NCBI GenBank assembly: GCA_000708835.1
Contig: DF237282.1
Coordinates: 1-64,000 of the forward strand
Origin: Klebsormidium nitens
Lineage: Eukaryota; Plantae; Klebsormidiophyceae
Length of the DNA: 64,000 nt
Direction: 5' to 3'
A model generated the notes under the pieces. The model ran no database searches. It worked only from the letters and a program-made list of their open reading frames with translations, and was not told where the DNA came from. Positions 55,470 through 64,000 of this stretch are shown here, piece after piece. The first letter of the stretch is position 1; every line of letters starts with the position of its first letter. The position numbers and the translations under genes were made by a program.

Positions 55470-56517
55470 GAAAGACACTATTTAACGCCACGCGTCTCAA
55501 TCACGTCTCGCCTGACTTGGAGTGGCTTGCGAATGCTTTCGTGGCGGAGAGAAAGATGAAGATCGAGCAAGCGGGGGACAGCACCACGTGGTCCGCTGAG
55601 ACGAGGGCGACGTTGGAGGCGGACATCCGCCACGCTTTCTTTGAAAGCAAGGCGAAGGCGGACACGCTGCTCGGCAAGGGAGTGGTTCGCCCCCTCTTCG
55701 ACCCAGACAAACCACCAAGGTTAGATTCCTATTCTCCTCTATGGTAAGGCCTATGGCCCCCCGGTTAAGTTCTGACGAGTGTCCGAATGCGGTTGAATTG
55801 GAACAGGACTAGAACTAAGTTGAGAATTCTGGAATCCCTGGGATGGCAGGCTTCGCTCGATTCATCACTTTGCCGAGCAACAGAAAAGTGTTCCCTCAGT
55901 GCTCGACAGCGAAGTAGAAGGCAGGGACCACTTCGAAGTAATTCGACTGACTAAATGTCAGAGCCCTGTGGCCTAAACCTCAGATTAGCGGATTGAACCT
56001 AAGAATCGAGGTCGGTTAAGATCTGGCTGTACGAGCCGTTAAGAAAGTTCGTTAGGAACAAATTCCAGAGCCCTCTGGGCACAGCCGAGAAAGTGCTGAC
56101 TCGAAGTAGTCCTGAGCATGTTGCTCGGCCATGTGCGCCAACATGACGTCACCTGTTGTGGCTTAATGCCGAGCCCTGTGGGCATGACTGTGAACAGAAT
56201 TGCTTCTTTAGGAGAATTAAGGGCAGAAGGCCCGGCCATGTGAGCCATAATTGGGTATAAACGCCTCTCGAGATGTGAGACAAGCCTATAAAAGGCAGGC
56301 ATGTGTCCTAATGCCGGTTGTGCCGGCCTGCAGGAGGAGCAACAACAAGAACAACCAGGGCAACTGGAACCAAGGCAACTGGAATGCCCCGCAGGGCGGA
56401 AGGCAGAACTTCGGAGGCGGACAAGGTGGCGGCCGCGTTAGGTTTGGCCGCGGCTTCGAAGGAGATAGAGAAAATCAAGGAGATCAGGGAGCGGGACAAA
56501 ATAGAGGCAACAGGTAA
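55470..56517 (+). CDS. Putative gag-like ORF fragment, possibly spliced (55470-55719 joined to 56334-56517), with an N/Q/G-rich RGG-like C-terminus
   Basis: EWLANAFVAERKMKIEQ...LFDPDKPP AG|gttaga ... ctgcag|G AGG AGC AAC joins in phase 2 to RSNNKNNQGNWNQGNWNAPQGGRQNFGGGQGGGRVRFGRG. Gag identity is inferred from position only. Confidence 0.4.
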
Positions 56518-56773
56518 ATTGCTGAGTGGTCATAAGTTCAGGGCCACGTGAGCGTGACGTGCTTCTCAGAAAGAACTTACAAATTTAGAAAAGTACCAAT
56601 GCAGGCAAGCGAGAGAACTTTAAGAGTTCGAGCTGGAGAACTTTTAGTTAGTCGAACCAATACCTTAGTCCCTGCTAACAAGCTGCTTTAAGAAAAGGAT
56701 CCGAATTTGTTTTTGAAGTCCGCTCTGGTCCTTTCGAGGCGAACCCCGGCGCATGTAATCTAGAATTCTAAAT

Positions 56774-59633
56774 GTGTCACGTGTACACTTTGCTTCAGAA
56801 ATGAATGGGCTTGAAAGGAGTTCAGTTCTGGTAAAGTACCGACATGAGTTTCTATGCACGACCTTCGAATTGCTGATGCATCACCGTCGTGATGGCAGCA
56901 ACTCACCGCCTGTGACGTCAGCGGCCGCGGCGCCGCCCGCGGCGGAGCCCTGTGGGCCCGACGCCGAGCGAAATTCGCTGGCCCAACTTGAAGCTGCGCA
57001 CGAGTCCTCAGAAGTTGCTCCAGACTTCGAACCTGCTGGAGACGCTGGGCACAGCTTCGAGTCCGCTCCTGACGAAATAGATCTCGACGCTGATCCGTTA
57101 ACCAGCGTCGGTAGTCTCTCAGATGCGTCAGATTGGGACTTCGAGTTCTTCTCGTCTCGTTTCACGCCACGTGTCGCGGCGGCCCCGGACGCGGAGCAGC
57201 TCGCCCGCGACCTGAGGTCCCTTCTCACGGAAATAGAAGCCGGGCCGTAGATTAGCGCGATGCAAGAAGAAGAGCTGTCCGCGTGGCTTAAGTCAGTTGA
57301 GGAGAGGGTGCACCCGGTGGAGAGTTTCGTGGCGGGCAGCTTTGGACGACATCTCCCCGTTTGGGAAGAGCTGCTCAAGGATTCAACGCGGCCTGCTTTG
57401 AGAACGGTCCTGTCTTGGTTACGAAACGGCATAAAGCCGTCTTTCGCCGGCACAGCCCAGTGTGATCCCAAGAAACTCGAGAAGGTTCGCCTTATGCTCA
57501 GGAGAACGCACTATAAACGGGCGCCCTGTTCAAGTAGCAAAAGTTCAAGTTCTTATGCTGCTAGAATTTTCGTTGTTCAAGTCGCTATATTGCTGAAACG
57601 ACCGGTTTTTTCTTTGTTCTAGTTGCATTCCTACTAGAACGTCCGGGGTTCAAGTCGCTTGTACCCGTTCAAGAGGCCATTCTGCTCGAACAAGGTCGAA
57701 ATGCTTGAACATACTTGAACGTCCGGTTTTCAAGTAGCTTATGCTGCTTGAACAGCTACTTGAACGGGGCCTTCGTTTATAGTGACGGTAGGGGAAGCGA
57801 AAGTCGAAGAGTGGCTCTTCGGGGATGTGCCGCATCCTGTAGAGTTCCACAACCACCGCTCGTTTTACGAGAACGCGGAGTTCGGAATCCAGACGGTGGG
57901 CGAAATGTTGGTTAACGGCTCAGTCGAGCTTTGCGCGCCAGGTCAGCGCAAACTGAAGGTAGTTAACCCCCTGGGAGTCGTCAACCTTCCCAAAGGACGC
58001 CTAGCGCTAGACGCCGGTTACGTAAACGCCTTCTCGAAGCCGCACCCGTTCAAATACGAGACGCTCCGCGCCATCCTAACCTTTCTGGCTGCCAACGGCT
58101 TCTTCTCAACCTGGGACTTCAAGGCGGGCTACTACCACGTGCTTATCCATCCCCGCTTTCGGACTTACTTCGGCTTCAAGATTGGCAAGGCCTACTTCCA
58201 GTACAACGCCATGTGCTTCGGGTGGTCCGAAGCCTGCTTCGCCTACACGCTCATCACTCAGGAAGCAGCCAAAGAGCTCCGAGTCAGGGGTGTCCCCGTT
58301 TCGAGCTACCTGGACGACGGTCTAACCGCCAATCAGAGCTTTGCTCTGTGCCTGTGGCTTATCGTAGTGATCGTCCGGTTCCTCACCCTTCTCGGGGCGG
58401 TCTTTAGCCTGTCCAAGTGCAAGTTCTGGCCGTCCCAAACGGGCGACTGGCTGGGATTCGTGGTCGACACTCAAGCGGAGCAGTTCAAAGTTTCGGAGGC
58501 CAAGTTAGCCAAAGTGAAGGCGGTCTTAACCGAGCTCGTCAACGCAACGGAGGTCAGCCCTCGCCTCCTTGCGAAGGTCGCGGGAAAGATCATCGCGATG
58601 GGGCCCGCGGTTCTGCCGGCCTCCCTCTTTAGTCGGCCTCTGTTTCAGGCAATGCAAGGACGCATTTCCTGGGATGCGGTTTTTCCTACGCCTGTGGCGG
58701 CCAAAACCACCGCCAAGCTCTTCCTGGAGCGTCTCGACGGCTGGAACCGTCGGAAGACGCTGGTTCCCCCGCCGAATCCTGATCGAAGCATCTTCCGATG
58801 CATCCGACTTCGGGTTTGGGGGATCCCTTCACCTCGCCGGCAGCCCCCCCTTCCACGTGGCAGGATCTTTGACGGAGGCGGAGGTCAGCCAATCAAGTAC
58901 GGCGCGCGAGATGATTGGCTTCCTTCGAATCCTTCAGCAGGCCGTGCTCCACCACCGCCTTCTCCTCTCTGGGGCTGCAATTCTGTTGATTGGCAACAAT
59001 CAAGGCGCGGTGGCGGCCGTCAACAGTATGAGGAGCCCAGCGCCCGACGTCAACGCTGCTCTCCAGGAAATCTTCGCGTTATGTTCTGAAGAAGATTTCG
59101 ATGTCCTGGCTCAGTGGATACCCCGGCGGGCAGAGCTGGCTGTGGAGGACGCCCTTAGTCGAGTTCCAGACGCTTCGGACTGGGGACTTGCCCCGACTGC
59201 CTTGAGAGCCGCCTTCTCGCTCTTTGGCCAGCCAGATGTAGACCTCTTTGCTTCTGACACGTGGCACGTAGCAGAGCGGTTCGTGACCCCGCGCTATATG
59301 CCGGGCTGCTGTGCAGTTGACGCCCTCCGAACGGACTGGCGGACTCTCGTGGAGCGAGGCGAGACGGCGTGGATATTCCCGCCGCTGAGAGCACTGCCTG
59401 GTGTAATTCAGTCACTCCGTAACTTCAGGACGGATGCGATACTGGTAGTTCCAGAGGCGACCACCACTAATTGGTGGCTGGAATTAATGCACTTAGGCAG
59501 CGGCGCGATCATGGCGGGTCCGCTCGAGATCGAGCGGTCCACGGATGCGTGCACCCCAAGCAGGCGGGTGCCTGCTGGAACCGTGAATCCCGCATTGTAT
59601 AAGCTCAGAGTATTCAAAATAAACTGGAAGTAA
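56774..59633 (+). pseudogene. DIRS pol: reverse transcriptase, RNase H and Dam-like methyltransferase (MT) domain; disrupted
   Basis: Pre-RT motif VAGSF..LPVW..VLSWLRNGIKPSF. RT: WDFKAGYYHV, YNAMCFGWSEA, SYLDDG, WLGFVVDT. RH: SDASDFGFGG, STAREM, DALSR. MT: DVDLFAS, DALRTDW, AWIFPP, LVVP...WW. Lesions: in-frame TAG at 57248-50, MITE at 57509-57784, 4-nt frameshift at 58748-51. Confidence 0.9.
57509..57784. mobile_element. 276 bp non-autonomous CACTA (EnSpm) element inserted in pol
   Basis: TIRs CACTATAAACG...CGTTTATAGTG, 3 bp TSD ACG (57506-08 and 57785-87), and about 10 internal TTCAAG/CTTGAA subterminal motifs. Removing it restores the frame LRRT-VGEAKVEEW. Confidence 0.92.
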
Positions 59634-59939
59634 GACGTGCAGGTAGCAGGAACGCACGTAAGTGACATGAAAGTGATTGAAAAACTCGAATGTAACACGC
59701 AGTTGCAGCATCCTGACAAGAGGACGTTGTAGGTCGAGATTCAGTGACGTAGACGTCTTGAAAGACTTGAGGAGATTGTCATAAGTAATTGTCATCAGAA
59801 TTGTATGCATAAATAAAAGGCGGCGCGCGCATGAGCACCACCTGTGCAAGCAAAGGCAAAAGTATATGTCACGGCACTCAGTCAATTACGTATGCGTCAG
59901 GTTAAATCGTTTGTTGAAAATATGACCACCGTTTGGCAG

Positions 59940-61496
59940 TCAAGTTGCAGAATCTCTCTGATCGGTACAGAATTCTCTACTTGCGTATAATCGGAAGGCG
60001 GCATAACCTTTCCACCGTCCTAACTCCATTAAGTGCTTAACACTGTACTTCAGGTTTACCGCCGCATGCTGAACGGCTGATCGACGGAAAGTATGCACAG
60101 TTTCCCCTTCGAACAGGCCGGCTTCCTTGAGTCGCTTCTGCAGTCTCTTCCTCAGAGTGTCGCTGCTCATTGGCTCGTTAACGAAGCCGGTCCGGCTCCT
60201 GTTCATGGCCCGGAACAGGAACCCATCCCCTCCAACCGGATGCCCTCCTTCTTCCATACCGAACAGCAGCGCCTCGGCAGCCTCCACAAAGGTTAGCCGG
60301 ATCTGAGATTCCGGCACCGCCAGCGGAATCCGCGCGCTGGGCTCCTGCCGGACTGTCTTGCTCCAACCCGGGTAAGCCGCCTGCTCTTCCAATTCCACTT
60401 GCCGACGCTGCAGCTGTCCGCACTCCTTTCCGCGGGCAAGCGGCTCCCAAAGGTATAACACTGCAGCCTGGTCTGTCAGCATGACGCACCTCTCTAGCCC
60501 AGGGGAACTCGCCTGGATCAGTCGCGCAAGGTGCGCCAGCAGCGCGTCCAGCTTCGCCTCTGTAAAGACTTTAGCACGCTGCACCCTCACCCCCTGTTCG
60601 TGCAACAGTTTCTCGTAGCCCACGCGGAATGACTTCACCACTTCGGCTTTAGCAGGATTATTCCGCCCTTCGAAACCGAGGAGAGAGTAGGACTTCGATA
60701 AGTCCTTTACCACGTGGGTCACAGCAGACGCTGACGGACTGGTCTCCCCCGTCCCCGGCAGCTTGGTCCTACATCCGGCCCTGTGATTGGGAATCCAATC
60801 CCCCATAATGAAGGCCCCTACGTCAGCGGCCGTGGCTGTCTCAACCGTGACTCCGAAGGCGTTCCGCGCTAAGAAATCTTGGTATTGCTGGAACGTCCGC
60901 TTAAGGCTACTGTTGCTGGCTTCATTAACGCTCTTCTCGGCAATTTTTCCGAAGCCGGCGAGCGCCCCGTCGTAAAACCGTTGTGTCTGCTCCGCGCTCA
61001 TCTGTCCGCTTGCTTCGCAGGTTCCACCCAAGCTCACCCCACGAATGGCTCGCAGCTGTTCCTCGCATCTCCGTTGGAAGCCCAACCTGCAGAAAGACAC
61101 CCCACGGTTATCTCCAATAATTGTCGTTTGGGCAAACGATTGTCTTTTTGGGGCGGCGTTTCCGGCACTTCAGAGGCGCTTTGCAGCCGTCCGGGCGCCC
61201 CCCAACCGTCCCCGAAGGTTGATATTGAATGGATCTGACAGGCTCTGTCTCTGTGATTGGTTGGAAAAGTGTTCTTATGATTTTAGAAGACGTCTTCTTC
61301 AAAGAGAAGAAGACGTTCTGCTAGTTCTTCAAGATTAACACAGAGGAAGCGCCCGTGGCGCCTCCTTACTTAGCTCTACGCTTCTTTCAAAGAAGTTCCG
61401 CTTCGACCCAGCCCACCCACCCTGAGTCGAATATCATACACTAACCCCTTACCTGGCTTCTGCCAACCCGCCGGTTTCTGTCAACGCAGACTCCAT
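59940..61496 (-). CDS. Tyrosine recombinase (YR) of the DIRS element, antisense to pol; main exon 59940-61086 with probable upstream exon 61453-61496
   Basis: Catalytic-type residues in order: ARGKE (R), WSKT (K), HTFRR (H-x-x-R), GRW (W), AFRLY (Y). Putative intron 61087-61452 (GCC AG|gtaagg ... ctttctgcag|G TTG) joins in phase 2. Confidence 0.88.
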
Positions 61497-61933
61497 GCCT
61501 CCCGGCGCCTTCTCTGCCGCCGCCTTCACGAAACTGCCCCGAAACTGCCTTCCATTCTGTAATGGACGTCTAACGCCCTGGCGCTTCGCTCGGCATCTCA
61601 CCGCGCGCGCCCCAACCCCCCCAACCCTGTTTCACCGCGGTCAACGAATCCCGACCGTCCATCCGATCTCCGCAGATGTCGACACCATTCAATATCAACC
61701 TTCGGTCCGCGGCGACCTTCTGCGTCACTTTATCCGCAGCGGTCGTTGCAATCTTCCGGACGCTCATACGCTTACCTCCGGTGCCCCTATGCCTTACCCG
61801 GCGTTTCCGGCACTTCAGAGGCGCTTTGCAGCCGTCCGGGCGCCCCCCAACACCCCTATCGGAAGGTTGATATTGAATGGATCTGACAACTCTGTCTCTG
61901 TGATTAGTTGGAAAAGTGTTCTTATGATTTTAG
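61154..61933 (+). repeat. Direct repeats B1 (61154-61286) and B2 (61799-61933), with a 21 nt inverted copy of their core at 61685-61705
   Basis: cggcgtttccggcacttcagaggcgctttgcagccgtccgggcgcccccc...gaaggttgatattgaatggatctgaca...ttggaaaagtgttcttatgattttag occurs twice; ccattcaatatcaaccttcgg is the exact reverse complement of 61212-61232. Confidence 0.92.
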
Positions 61934-62582: not shown

Positions 62583-63826
62583 ATGATGGCGCAAGGCGTC
62601 TACCTTGACAGCAGGCCGGGAGCTTGGTGTTCTGGCTGTGCAACTTTCGTATGTCTGATCCTCTTAGCTTCTTTGGGGAGGATGCCGGTCGCTCTTGGGA
62701 GTTCCTATCCGTATCTATCCGGCCTCAATAATGTGATTGTCCCAGGACAGCTGACATTGAGCTACTTTGACTACCTTGGGGGATCCCTTAGCAACACACA
62801 AGAATGCCTCTGGTCAAATGCCCCCATGTCCAATGGTAGCAGCAATGCCGCCTTGGGGATCCGAGGCTGCCTCAAGTCTACAGACTTTGCGGCCTTGGGA
62901 GACAAGTGGAGCTACAACTACAGTTCCTGCGCGTTCCAGTACTGGGGCGCCAGCAACAGAAACCGCCTCTGCTTAGATGCAGCTGAGTTGAACGTGTACG
63001 TACCCTGACTCTGGAAAAGCCTTGTATTTCTTTGAGACAGGACGTCAAAGTATGGAGTCAAGGTTGAGCTTTTCTGGCTACTTGCTTTCACACCCCTATC
63101 CGTCCTGCTGATGCACGGCCGGCTTAGACCTTGTAGTGTCACAGACCTAATTTGTTCTGCTCTAATGTAAACATATTCTGTAATGCAGTGGCAGATACGA
63201 GCTCTGGACGGCAGCTCAAGCTTCAAACAGCCCCCCAGGTAAGAGAAGACAAGTAAGACCTCTTGTTAACCACATGGGGCCCTGTATCTGATTGACTTCA
63301 AGTTGGTATGGCTAGACAACCGTTACACTCCAGTGATATATTCCAAGCTGCTTGTTCCTTCTGGTTCCAAATTGTCAACTCGAATCTAGCTAGCTTATTA
63401 AAACGGTGAGGGAAGCTTGAGGTCGAATCAACTAGAAGTACACAGCAAAACCAGCTCTGGCGGACAACCACCAGCATGACGCAACTCTATTGTTGCACAT
63501 ATGCAGGTTACAGCTGGTATTCTGGCTATGATCTCAACCCGGATTCTGCAAACCTCGTTCTGCAATTACTGAGTACCTCCTGCACGCTTAACCCGTGTGG
63601 CTCTTGCAAAGTCAACCAAACCCTACTTTGTGGAGCAAACAATGGGCTCATTTCCAACAACCCCGCCAACTGCGCCCAGCTCTGTAACTCGCTGTCTGGA
63701 TGCGGCTGTGCGGGATTTGTTGTGGATCCCCAGTCCGGGTGTTGCTACCTGAAGAACGTATCTCCTTCGACTGCGTTTGTAAAGGCGAGCAAGGGATTCG
63801 ATGCCTACGTGCGATCCGACGTGTGA
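62583..63826 (+). CDS. Probably secreted Cys-rich protein with a C-terminal PAN/Apple-like domain, 3 exons (62583-62995, 63189-63238, 63507-63826), 260 aa
   Basis: Hydrophobic N-terminal segment CATFVCLILLASLG; phase-consistent splicing (783 nt); C-terminal NPANCAQLCNSLSGCGCAGFVV...GCCYLKN matches the PAN/Apple Cys pattern. Confidence 0.75.
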
Positions 63827-64000
63827 GCAGGCCCGGACTTTCCCTGTGTTTCTTTTCAGTTGACTACGGTCATTGTAGGATCGCATCATGAGAGAGGGCT
63901 TTGACCTCCCAGCTTTTGTGTGCTTGAAAATCACAACTCGAAAAGAAGCATCAGAGAACGGCGCGCCTTTGCAAACCACTATTTTCTTGTTGAACTCCTT

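Follow-up and report, generated by a model that had tools for sequence, protein, structure and literature searches.

A decayed, probably PAT-group retrotransposon of Klebsormidium nitens with a reverse-strand recombinase gene and a putative antisense intron

A convergent pair of genes in the streptophyte alga Klebsormidium nitens, one for a reverse transcriptase polyprotein and the other for a tyrosine recombinase (YR), raises the question of whether a retrotransposon can keep a spliceosomal intron in the gene for its integration enzyme when that gene reads against the genomic RNA. The window analysed is a 64,000-nucleotide stretch of contig DF237282.1, in which a preliminary description had placed a DIRS-type retrotransposon at 57260-61500. 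That identification holds for the protein domains and for the convergent YR; decay and a 5′ truncation had been overlooked, and the element is also larger, spanning about 55475-61933. We consider it likely that this segment is an old, inactive, 5′-truncated copy of a multi-copy Klebsormidium retrotransposon of the DIRS order and PAT group, with gag and pol (RT-RH-MT) on the forward strand, YR on the reverse strand and a B-A-B arrangement of repeats. Its features are as follows.

55475-55743, forward: gag-like ORF fragment, 5′-truncated (tblastn to K. nitens protein P0136)
55744-56333, forward: non-coding stretch with three degenerate repeats of ~105 bp, possible gag sense intron (motif search, sequence reading)
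56334-56517, forward: Gly/Arg/Asn-rich ORF, possible C-terminal part of gag (within ORF 56251-56517)
56870-59633, forward: pol, with an acidic N-terminal region, RT, RNase H and Dam-like MT (Pfam, tblastn, alignment)
about 58082-58462, about 58790-59100 and about 59202-59483, forward: RT, RNase H and Dam-like MT domains of pol, respectively
57509-57787, no strand: CACTA/EnSpm-type MITE of 276 bp (57509-57784) within pol, plus the second copy of its target duplication (terminal inverted repeats, homology gap)
59634-59939, no strand: 306-nt spacer between the convergent stops (no repeat partner; YR homology ends at 59985)
59940-61086, reverse: YR exon 2 (alignment A1, tblastn, Cre-like model)
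61087-61452, reverse: putative spliceosomal intron of YR, 366 nt, containing B1 (sequence reading, conserved acceptor)
61154-61286, no strand: internal direct repeat B1 (92.6% identical to B2, sharp edges)
61287-61798, no strand: 512-bp segment flanked by B1 and B2, taken as internal repeat A2 (layout fit)
61453-61496, reverse: coding portion of YR exon 1, 14 codons plus 2 nt, starting Met-Glu-Ser-Ala-Leu (gene models)
61685-61705, no strand: exact inverted copy of a 21-nt B segment, inside A2 (blastn-short, repeat search)
61799-61933, no strand: direct repeat B2, right end of the element (similarity stops at 61933)

Composition and decay of the element

The RT-RH-MT unit does end at 59633 on the forward strand, as Pfam matches and comparison with relatives confirm, but its start lies at 56870, about 390 nt upstream of the 57260 first proposed. 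ORF 57782-59089 matches RVT_1 (E 9e-12). The Dam-type MT match in ORF 58569-59633 is weak (E 0.007-0.01, under the Pfam cut-off); the close relative P0143 gives E 1e-5, and the distant relatives P0152 and P0154 have Dam above the cut-off in the same position, at the end of the order RVT_1, RNase H (RVT_3/RT_RNaseH), Dam, each above the cut-off. RNase H in the window is assigned by homology alone, the region aligning with that of the relatives, and the C-terminus of pol agrees with that of P0136. Three lesions interrupt the gene. tblastn with P0092 returns three colinear pieces (56870-57508, 57785-58756 and 58752-59111), the first two separated by the MITE, past which pol homology resumes exactly. 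The MITE is flanked by a 3-bp ACG duplication (57506-08 and 57785-87), has 30-nt terminal inverted repeats that begin with CACTA and are 87% complementary (57509-57538 / 57755-57784), and contains numerous subterminal TTCAAGTAGC-like repeats. Alignment A2 reveals an in-frame TAG at 57248-57250, where relatives have Glu, and a 1-nt frameshift near 58752-58765, across which relatives read WNGRRWFPRR.

Upstream of pol, residues 42-117 of P0136 align to 55481-55720 at 44% identity. Since the homology begins only at residue 42, we count it as decay by 5′ truncation; stops lie directly upstream of the fragment, and matches to an N-terminal gag exon further left were at chance level, none of them credible. 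No CCHC zinc knuckle was found in the gag-like region, and the Gly/Arg/Asn-rich ORF had no match among the fetched proteins. The intervening non-coding stretch carries a 15-nt motif at 55959, 56066 and 56169 (0.05 expected by chance), an array that was detected by motif search and not reported by TRF. Judged by its letters, this stretch is a possible sense-strand gag intron, bounded by GTAAGG ... CCTGCAG and keeping the phase of the ORF that follows.

The right end contains repeats, as the preliminary description had stated, but their B-A-B structure had been missed. Only the right half of a set of split direct repeats, A1 ... B1-A2-B2, is visible: B1, B2 and the 512-bp segment between them are present and the left repeat is missing. 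A sensitive search of the window gave no twin of 61287-61798, an absence that we attribute to the 5′ truncation of this copy. From the fit to the DIRS/PAT layout, quoted as 'A-coding-B-A-B' (PMC5890265), we infer that 61287-61798 is repeat A. The 92.6% identity between B1 and B2 is counted as a further sign of decay. The inverted 21-nt copy within A2 (blastn-short E 7e-6 against the full 64 kb) pairs with 61212-61232 and, over 19 nt, with 61862-61880; the right end has no inverted sequence beyond this 21-30-nt motif, and terminal inverted repeats are absent.

With a 5′ end truncated inside gag, a pol gene carrying a TAG, a MITE and a frameshift, and a YR gene whose last residues are frameshifted, this copy is dead. 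RT, RNase H, a tyrosine recombinase and dispersed copies with linked YR and pol are all found, as in the DIRS order, and a Dam-like MT follows RNase H, as in the PAT group; Ngaro and VIPER are without this domain, which speaks against assignment to Ngaro. No Pfam family beyond those named, and hence no DDE integrase or endonuclease, matched any scanned ORF. Neither blastn nor tblastn detected additional copies in the window. Homologues in the family number 85-88 for YR and 75 for pol, and K. nitens proteins come nearest, at 83-93% identity. When metagenome, prokaryote-genome and viral contigs were scanned with a YR profile, pattern matches and no relatives were returned, and the profile search yielded the Klebsormidium-type clade only.

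Convergence of pol and the recombinase gene

Direct reading of this one copy confirms that YR lies on the reverse strand, ends at 59940 and converges with pol. The YR ORF (61100-59940) matches Phage_integrase at E 0.001, and its paralogue P0002 does so above the cut-off. A sequence-profile search of the PDB gave no match, whereas a fold search with the AF2 model succeeded, the best matches being Cre (Foldseek E 4e-6, TMt 0.57-0.62); the protein atlas returned generic recombinase clusters only. Catalytic-type residues R223, K248, H336, R339, W363 and Y372 (ORF numbering) are invariant or nearly so in the family (alignment A1). By tblastn, 61088-59985 is 83-91% identical to K. nitens proteins, and the tail after Y372 is frameshifted relative to the family end ..LYVEEVWRK. 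Nothing else in the window repeats the region 59634-59990, which includes the spacer.

Because the orientation was read in one copy, and because nesting is frequent among DIRS-type elements, the convergence might be peculiar to this locus, produced by two elements lying tail to tail or by a local inversion, in a family whose YR is otherwise co-oriented with pol as in PAT/TOC3. We regard this as very unlikely. Chance juxtaposition, which the preliminary description had named as a way in which its reading could fail, was checked against the homologues: YR and pol homologues share a contig in 16 pairs, four of them on contigs of only 5.7-7.6 kb, and at three annotated K. nitens loci they are immediate neighbours with consecutive accessions (GAQ83653/4, GAQ86251/2 and GAQ90234/5). 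Moreover, both ORFs reach family-typical C-termini, so that neither is cut by a junction, the 306-nt spacer between them is clean, and the B-A-B repeats lie beyond the 5′ end of YR, as expected of a native right end. The near-intact state of the YR ORF, compared with three lesions in pol, together with the gene-like combination of a putative intron and a predicted separate promoter, could also suggest a domesticated host gene beside a dead retroelement remnant. This is more improbable still, given that there are dozens of diverged YR paralogues, mostly linked to pol, and that the C-terminus of YR is frameshifted in this copy. By our own estimate, the ~3-4% divergence per lineage indicated by B1/B2 makes it not unlikely that a 1.1-kb ORF would stay open by chance. 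A single element with pol and YR convergent remains our reading of the locus.

The putative recombinase intron

The splice signals reported for YR, and the in-phase joining of an upstream Met exon, are present in the sequence. The proposed exon 1 begins with an ATG at 61496-61494 and ends at the donor CAG|GTAAGG, with GT at 61452-61451; the acceptor AG at 61088-61087 is preceded by a pyrimidine-rich run, and joining in phase creates an AG|G (Arg) codon. Exon 1 falls within A and the intron spans B1. Among seven GTRAG donors within 1.5 kb upstream, none but this one follows an open, correctly phased ATG exon.

The putative intron, whose refutation had been tied to unconserved or unused splice sites, has comparative support: four public K. 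nitens gene models have a coinciding intron, and the signature of the acceptor is kept across the family. The four models (GAQ93183.1, GAQ92604.1, GAQ85468.1 and GAQ91268.1) share an M[E/D]xAL first exon that joins at R-x-x-FQR; the start, length and phase of exon 1 are conserved in five copies including that at 55475-61933. In 14 of the 15 in-register unspliced calls, down to about 46% identity, Arg at the junction follows Cys, Phe, Tyr or Trp, and a further two have Cys-Arg one residue out of register; these pairs are as given by reading through a Y-AG acceptor. The block R-x-x-FQR..IRGV is conserved although it lies upstream of the first in-frame ATG, and several prokaryote-style YR calls are forced to start at GTG or TTG. 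Still further upstream, the copies either lose the frame or show no relation to one another. The antisense YR gene therefore probably carries a conserved intron, as far as comparison of its copies can tell.

YR might instead lack a functional intron and start at the Met34 ATG (about 61002) or at a non-AUG codon, the Met exon being a gene-prediction artefact repeated in similar copies. Many database calls, of 341-349 aa, do begin at Met34; in the closest subfamily, Met34 could start a shorter, catalytically complete protein unspliced, chance alone could plausibly give one in-phase ATG exon across seven strong donors, and the K. nitens gene models were perhaps predicted ab initio from identical signals. 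However, the protein sequence of the ~30 residues before Met34 is kept at identities as low as 42-46%, and the Met34 position is Trp in more distant subfamilies. The limitation of pre-junction codons, directly before AG, to TGG and those with a final pyrimidine, the loss of frame and similarity upstream, and the conservation of exon 1 in five copies likewise argue for splicing, and we consider the intronless alternative unlikely.

If the intron is used as predicted, intact copies might work as follows. A full-length sense RNA would serve both as gag/pol mRNA and as the template for reverse transcription, and YR would be made from a separate antisense mRNA starting in A, between both B repeats, presumably from a promoter in 61287-61798. 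Splicing of the short Met exon (61496-61453) to the main exon, which starts at 61086, would take out the 366-nt intron with B1, and the mRNA would end in the spacer of about 300 nt, opposite the end of pol. Since the GT..AG signals lie on the antisense strand only, genomic RNA would keep the intron and each new copy would inherit it; the reasoning that an antisense intron would escape splicing of the genomic RNA is sound. The Cre-like YR would then insert the circularised cDNA. With exon 1 and the YR promoter both in A, this repeat would be a two-way promoter, giving sense RNA from its left copy and YR mRNA from its internal copy; the 3′ LTR and HBZ of HTLV-1 follow a like logic.

We suggest, tentatively, that the intron is genuine and was present in the ancestor of the whole Klebsormidium family, that its antisense position relative to the genomic RNA has carried it through many retrotransposition cycles, that exon 1 and the promoter lie in a two-way A repeat, and that descriptions of the DIRS order, kangaroo included, contain no integration gene with such an intron. 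A full-text literature search, with coverage that left out the primary kangaroo paper and YR-retrotransposon reviews, returned no described antisense intron in a YR retrotransposon. If correct, the proposal would make an essential integration enzyme dependent on a spliceosomal intron that survives reverse transcription only because it is antisense, a modest and possibly new finding. As the genomic RNA would be fully complementary to YR mRNA, we would also expect active copies to form double-stranded RNA and attract RNA interference. The candidate gag intron, if real, would mean that antisense orientation is not the sole way for the element to keep introns.

Relation to known elements

The layout, for which novelty had been raised subject to comparison with known families, is not new, since inversion of YR is the defining trait of kangaroo of Volvox carteri (Duncan et al. 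2002, as cited in PMC4157794 and PMC3266345) and is also seen in a PAT element of Daphnia pulex (PMC4157794). In the descriptions given by these later papers, kangaroo resembles the Klebsormidium element in its DIRS order, PAT group, RT-RH-MT pol, inverted YR, green-lineage host and gag without a zinc finger and, to judge from the right end, in having direct (split) rather than inverted terminal repeats. However, its internal repeats are placed between MT and YR (PMC4157794), whereas those of the Klebsormidium element lie beyond YR and its spacer has no repeat; the hosts are a chlorophyte and a streptophyte, respectively. The 'novel' Daphnia pulex PAT element (Szitenberg et al. 2014, PMC4157794, Fig. 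1G) has the same order of parts, with internal repeats after YR, just before the 3′ terminal repeat, a likeness of layout only; its host is an animal and PMC4157794 reports nothing on introns. Inversion of YR was inferred to have arisen more than once (PMC4157794), and the present case fits that view, extending the inverted-YR layout of the kangaroo and Daphnia PAT type to a streptophyte alga near the land-plant lineage.

PAT1/TOC3 share the RT-RH-MT pol, the YR and, to judge from the right end, the A-coding-B-A-B logic, but their YR is co-oriented with pol. DIRS1 of Dictyostelium belongs to the same order, with the same enzyme set and integration by YR; its inverted terminal repeats, internal complementary region and overlapping co-oriented ORFs have no counterpart in the Klebsormidium element. 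By analogy, a known parallel to the proposed intron is HBZ of HTLV-1, a spliced antisense gene expressed from the right-hand terminal repeat with its first exon in that repeat, so that the sense genomic RNA keeps a spliceosomal intron (PMC1459196). HBZ, however, is an accessory regulator of a retrovirus and not an integration enzyme, and its sequence is unrelated to that of the Klebsormidium YR.

Coding domains and linkage of a convergent recombinase

The element combines a forward-strand reverse transcriptase (RT), RNase H (RH) and Dam-like methyltransferase (MT) unit, hereafter pol, with a tyrosine recombinase (YR) gene on the reverse strand.

Coding regions of the element
57782-59089, forward strand: reverse transcriptase ORF (Pfam RVT_1, E 9e-12)
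58569-59633, forward strand: Dam-type methyltransferase ORF (weak Pfam match, E 0.007-0.01)
61100-59940, reverse strand: YR ORF (weak Pfam match, Phage_integrase, E 0.001)

The weak domain calls are backed by homologous proteins that score better: Phage_integrase is above the Pfam cut-off in the YR paralogue P0002, the Pfam Dam match reaches E 1e-5 in the close pol relative P0143, and in P0152 and P0154, which are more distant pol relatives, RVT_1, RNase H and Dam follow one another in this order, all above cut-off. An AlphaFold2 model of YR (mean pLDDT 74) has Cre recombinase as its best Foldseek match (E 4e-6; TMt 0.57-0.62 across about 330-350 columns), and the expected R-K-H-R-W-Y catalytic positions, which are invariant or nearly so in the family alignment, are present in the window's copy. 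The stop codons of pol (59633) and YR (59940) are convergent and lie 306 nt apart; the ORF listing and Pfam confirm the opposed orientation of RT and MT versus YR that was reported in the preliminary description.

Searches identified 85-88 relatives for YR and 75 for RT, the closest named relatives being Klebsormidium nitens proteins with 83-93% identity. YR and pol homologue matches pair on contigs of exactly equal size in 16 cases, four of which involve contigs of merely 5.7-7.6 kb, and accessions are consecutive in all three K. nitens YR/pol pairs looked up (GAQ83653/83654, GAQ86251/86252 and GAQ90234/90235). These pairs bear out the proposal that YR and pol form one element; they demonstrate linkage, and orientation was read in the window's copy only. 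Scans of three contig collections (metagenome, prokaryote-genome and viral) with the YR profile returned pattern matches but no relatives.

A probable antisense intron in the recombinase gene

The splice signals originally proposed to join an upstream Met exon to YR (donor 61452, acceptor 61087) are present on reading the sequence. On the reverse strand, exon 1 opens with an ATG at 61496-61494 and runs for 14 codons to an AG/GTAAGG donor, with the GT at 61452-61451. The acceptor AG, at 61088-61087, is preceded by TCTTTCTGC; the split codon AG/G encodes Arg and the frame runs on into YR. The 1.5 kb upstream contains seven GTRAG donors, of which only the proposed one follows an open, correctly phased ATG exon. 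Such uniqueness alone is weak evidence, and the comparative data are stronger.

The block R-x-x-F-Q-R...I-R-G-V, right behind the acceptor, is conserved down to 42-46% identity and lies upstream of Met34, the first in-frame Met of the unspliced ORF, which is replaced by Trp in more distant subfamilies. Since, in addition, several prokaryote-style YR gene calls are forced to GTG or TTG starts, the start codon appears to be supplied from elsewhere. Of 15 unspliced calls that match in register, 14 have Cys, Phe, Tyr or Trp directly ahead of the junction Arg, the outcome expected from reading through a pyrimidine-AG acceptor; two further unspliced calls contain Cys-Arg shifted one residue out of register. 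Farther upstream of the junction, the copies diverge in frame and sequence. Four public K. nitens gene models, which are possibly ab initio predictions (GAQ93183.1, GAQ92604.1, GAQ85468.1 and GAQ91268.1), have the same M-[E/D]-x-A-L first exon of similar length, joined at the same Arg. This support from relatives suggests that the intron is probably used.

Right-end repeats, proposed mechanism and comparison with known elements

The sole repeat in the element is a direct repeat of 133-135 bp with sharp edges (B1, 61154-61286, and B2, 61799-61933; 92.6% identical), the copies of which are separated by 512 bp. B1 lies inside the putative intron and exon 1 inside the 512-bp segment. Divergence of about 7% between B1 and B2 is consistent with an old insertion. 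DIRS/PAT elements have been given the order 'A-coding-B-A-B' (PMC5890265), and the B copies with the intervening 512 bp fit its right half. No left-end twin of the 512 bp was found in the window, as expected for a 5'-truncated copy, and we therefore only infer that this segment is repeat A. An exact 21-nt inverted copy of part of B (61212-61232; 19 nt shared with 61862-61880) is located between the B copies at 61685-61705, and may serve for recombinase binding or for RNA/cDNA pairing. Between B2 and the YR start codon, the reverse strand also contains upstream ATGs and a 65-codon ORF (61570-61767); a YR transcript beginning at B2 or close to it would carry them as upstream ORFs, which makes a transcription start nearer 61500 probable.

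We propose that the element is a PAT-group retrotransposon whose sense RNA would be used for gag/pol and reverse transcription, the recombinase having its own mRNA, antisense and spliced, which would start in the internal A segment. With splice signals on the antisense strand only, genomic RNA would retain the intron, which would be inherited by new copies. This sparing of an antisense intron, suggested in the preliminary description, is a reasonable inference, and the mechanism predicts that exon 1 and the acceptor stay conserved among diverged paralogues, as seen. HBZ of HTLV-1, a spliced antisense gene that starts in the 3' LTR (PMC1459196), follows the same antisense-splicing logic.

Reading of the sequence also reveals a possible intron in sense orientation.

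Candidate gag intron
55744-56333, forward strand: possible gag intron (donor TG/GTAAGG, 55743/55744; acceptor CCTGCAG/G, 56333/56334)

The candidate splice is in phase with a Gly/Arg/Asn-rich ORF (56334-56517), and the 590-nt candidate intron contains three degenerate repeats of ~105 bp (motif at 55959, 56066 and 56169). The same motif occurs once again in pol, at 56943. Retroviruses retain introns through incomplete splicing. If the gag intron is real, incomplete splicing would also preserve introns in this element, and antisense orientation would not be the sole route to keeping them.

An inverted YR is a described hallmark of kangaroo from Volvox and is also reported for a Daphnia pulex PAT element (PMC4157794; PMC3266345); one of these studies concludes that the inversion arose more than once (PMC4157794). 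Such a layout has thus been described before: the preliminary interpretation holds for a DIRS-type element with a linked antisense YR and comparative intron support, but not for novelty of layout. Judged from published layout descriptions, the element differs from kangaroo, in which internal repeats lie between MT and YR, whereas the Daphnia pulex form, with internal repeats immediately before the 3' terminal repeat, has the order seen here (PMC4157794). Titles, abstracts and term counts of the nine papers naming both Klebsormidium and DIRS gave no evident account of the Klebsormidium family, which, as far as these sources extend, seems undescribed so far. The conserved antisense intron may be the single new feature, kangaroo being compared by layout description only.

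Decay and extent of the copy

The copy is dead and is larger than the interval initially flagged (57260-61500). Intact relatives read without interruption from the 158-aa acidic ORF at 56774-57250 into the ORF beginning at 57260, their Met-Leu-Met-His pol start mapping to 56870; in the alignment, the TAG at 57248-57250 of the window occupies a Glu position. Pol homology breaks off at 57508 and restarts at 57785.

Insertion in the gap in pol homology
57509-57784 (57506-57787 with target duplication), no strand assigned: CACTA/EnSpm-type non-autonomous transposon (MITE), 276 bp, in pol

The 30-nt terminal inverted repeats of this MITE begin with CACTA (57509-57538 and 57755-57784; 87% complementary), subterminal TTCAAGTAGC-like repeats are numerous and the target duplication is 3 bp (ACG). 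Together with one duplication copy, the MITE measures 279 bp, which is divisible by three, yet stops occur inside it. No second copy was found elsewhere in the window. The RT and RH-MT frames are parted by a 1-base frameshift near 58752-58765, where relatives read WNGRRWFPRR. The C-termini of the window's pol and its relative P0136 agree, indicating that 59633 is the native stop. YR is alignable to relatives over 61088-59985; in its tail (59985-59940, reverse strand) the family ending LYVEEVWRK is replaced by 14 unrelated residues, apparently through small indels after the catalytic Tyr.

Towards the left end, 55481-55720 matches residues 42-117 of P0136 (the gag-like N-terminal part). Because stops lie directly upstream of this match and no credible gag N-terminal exon was found further left of 55481, the copy is most likely 5'-truncated near 55475. 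Its absence from the annotated proteins fits this decayed state. The right flank, 62583-64000, is presumably host DNA with cysteine-rich ORFs.
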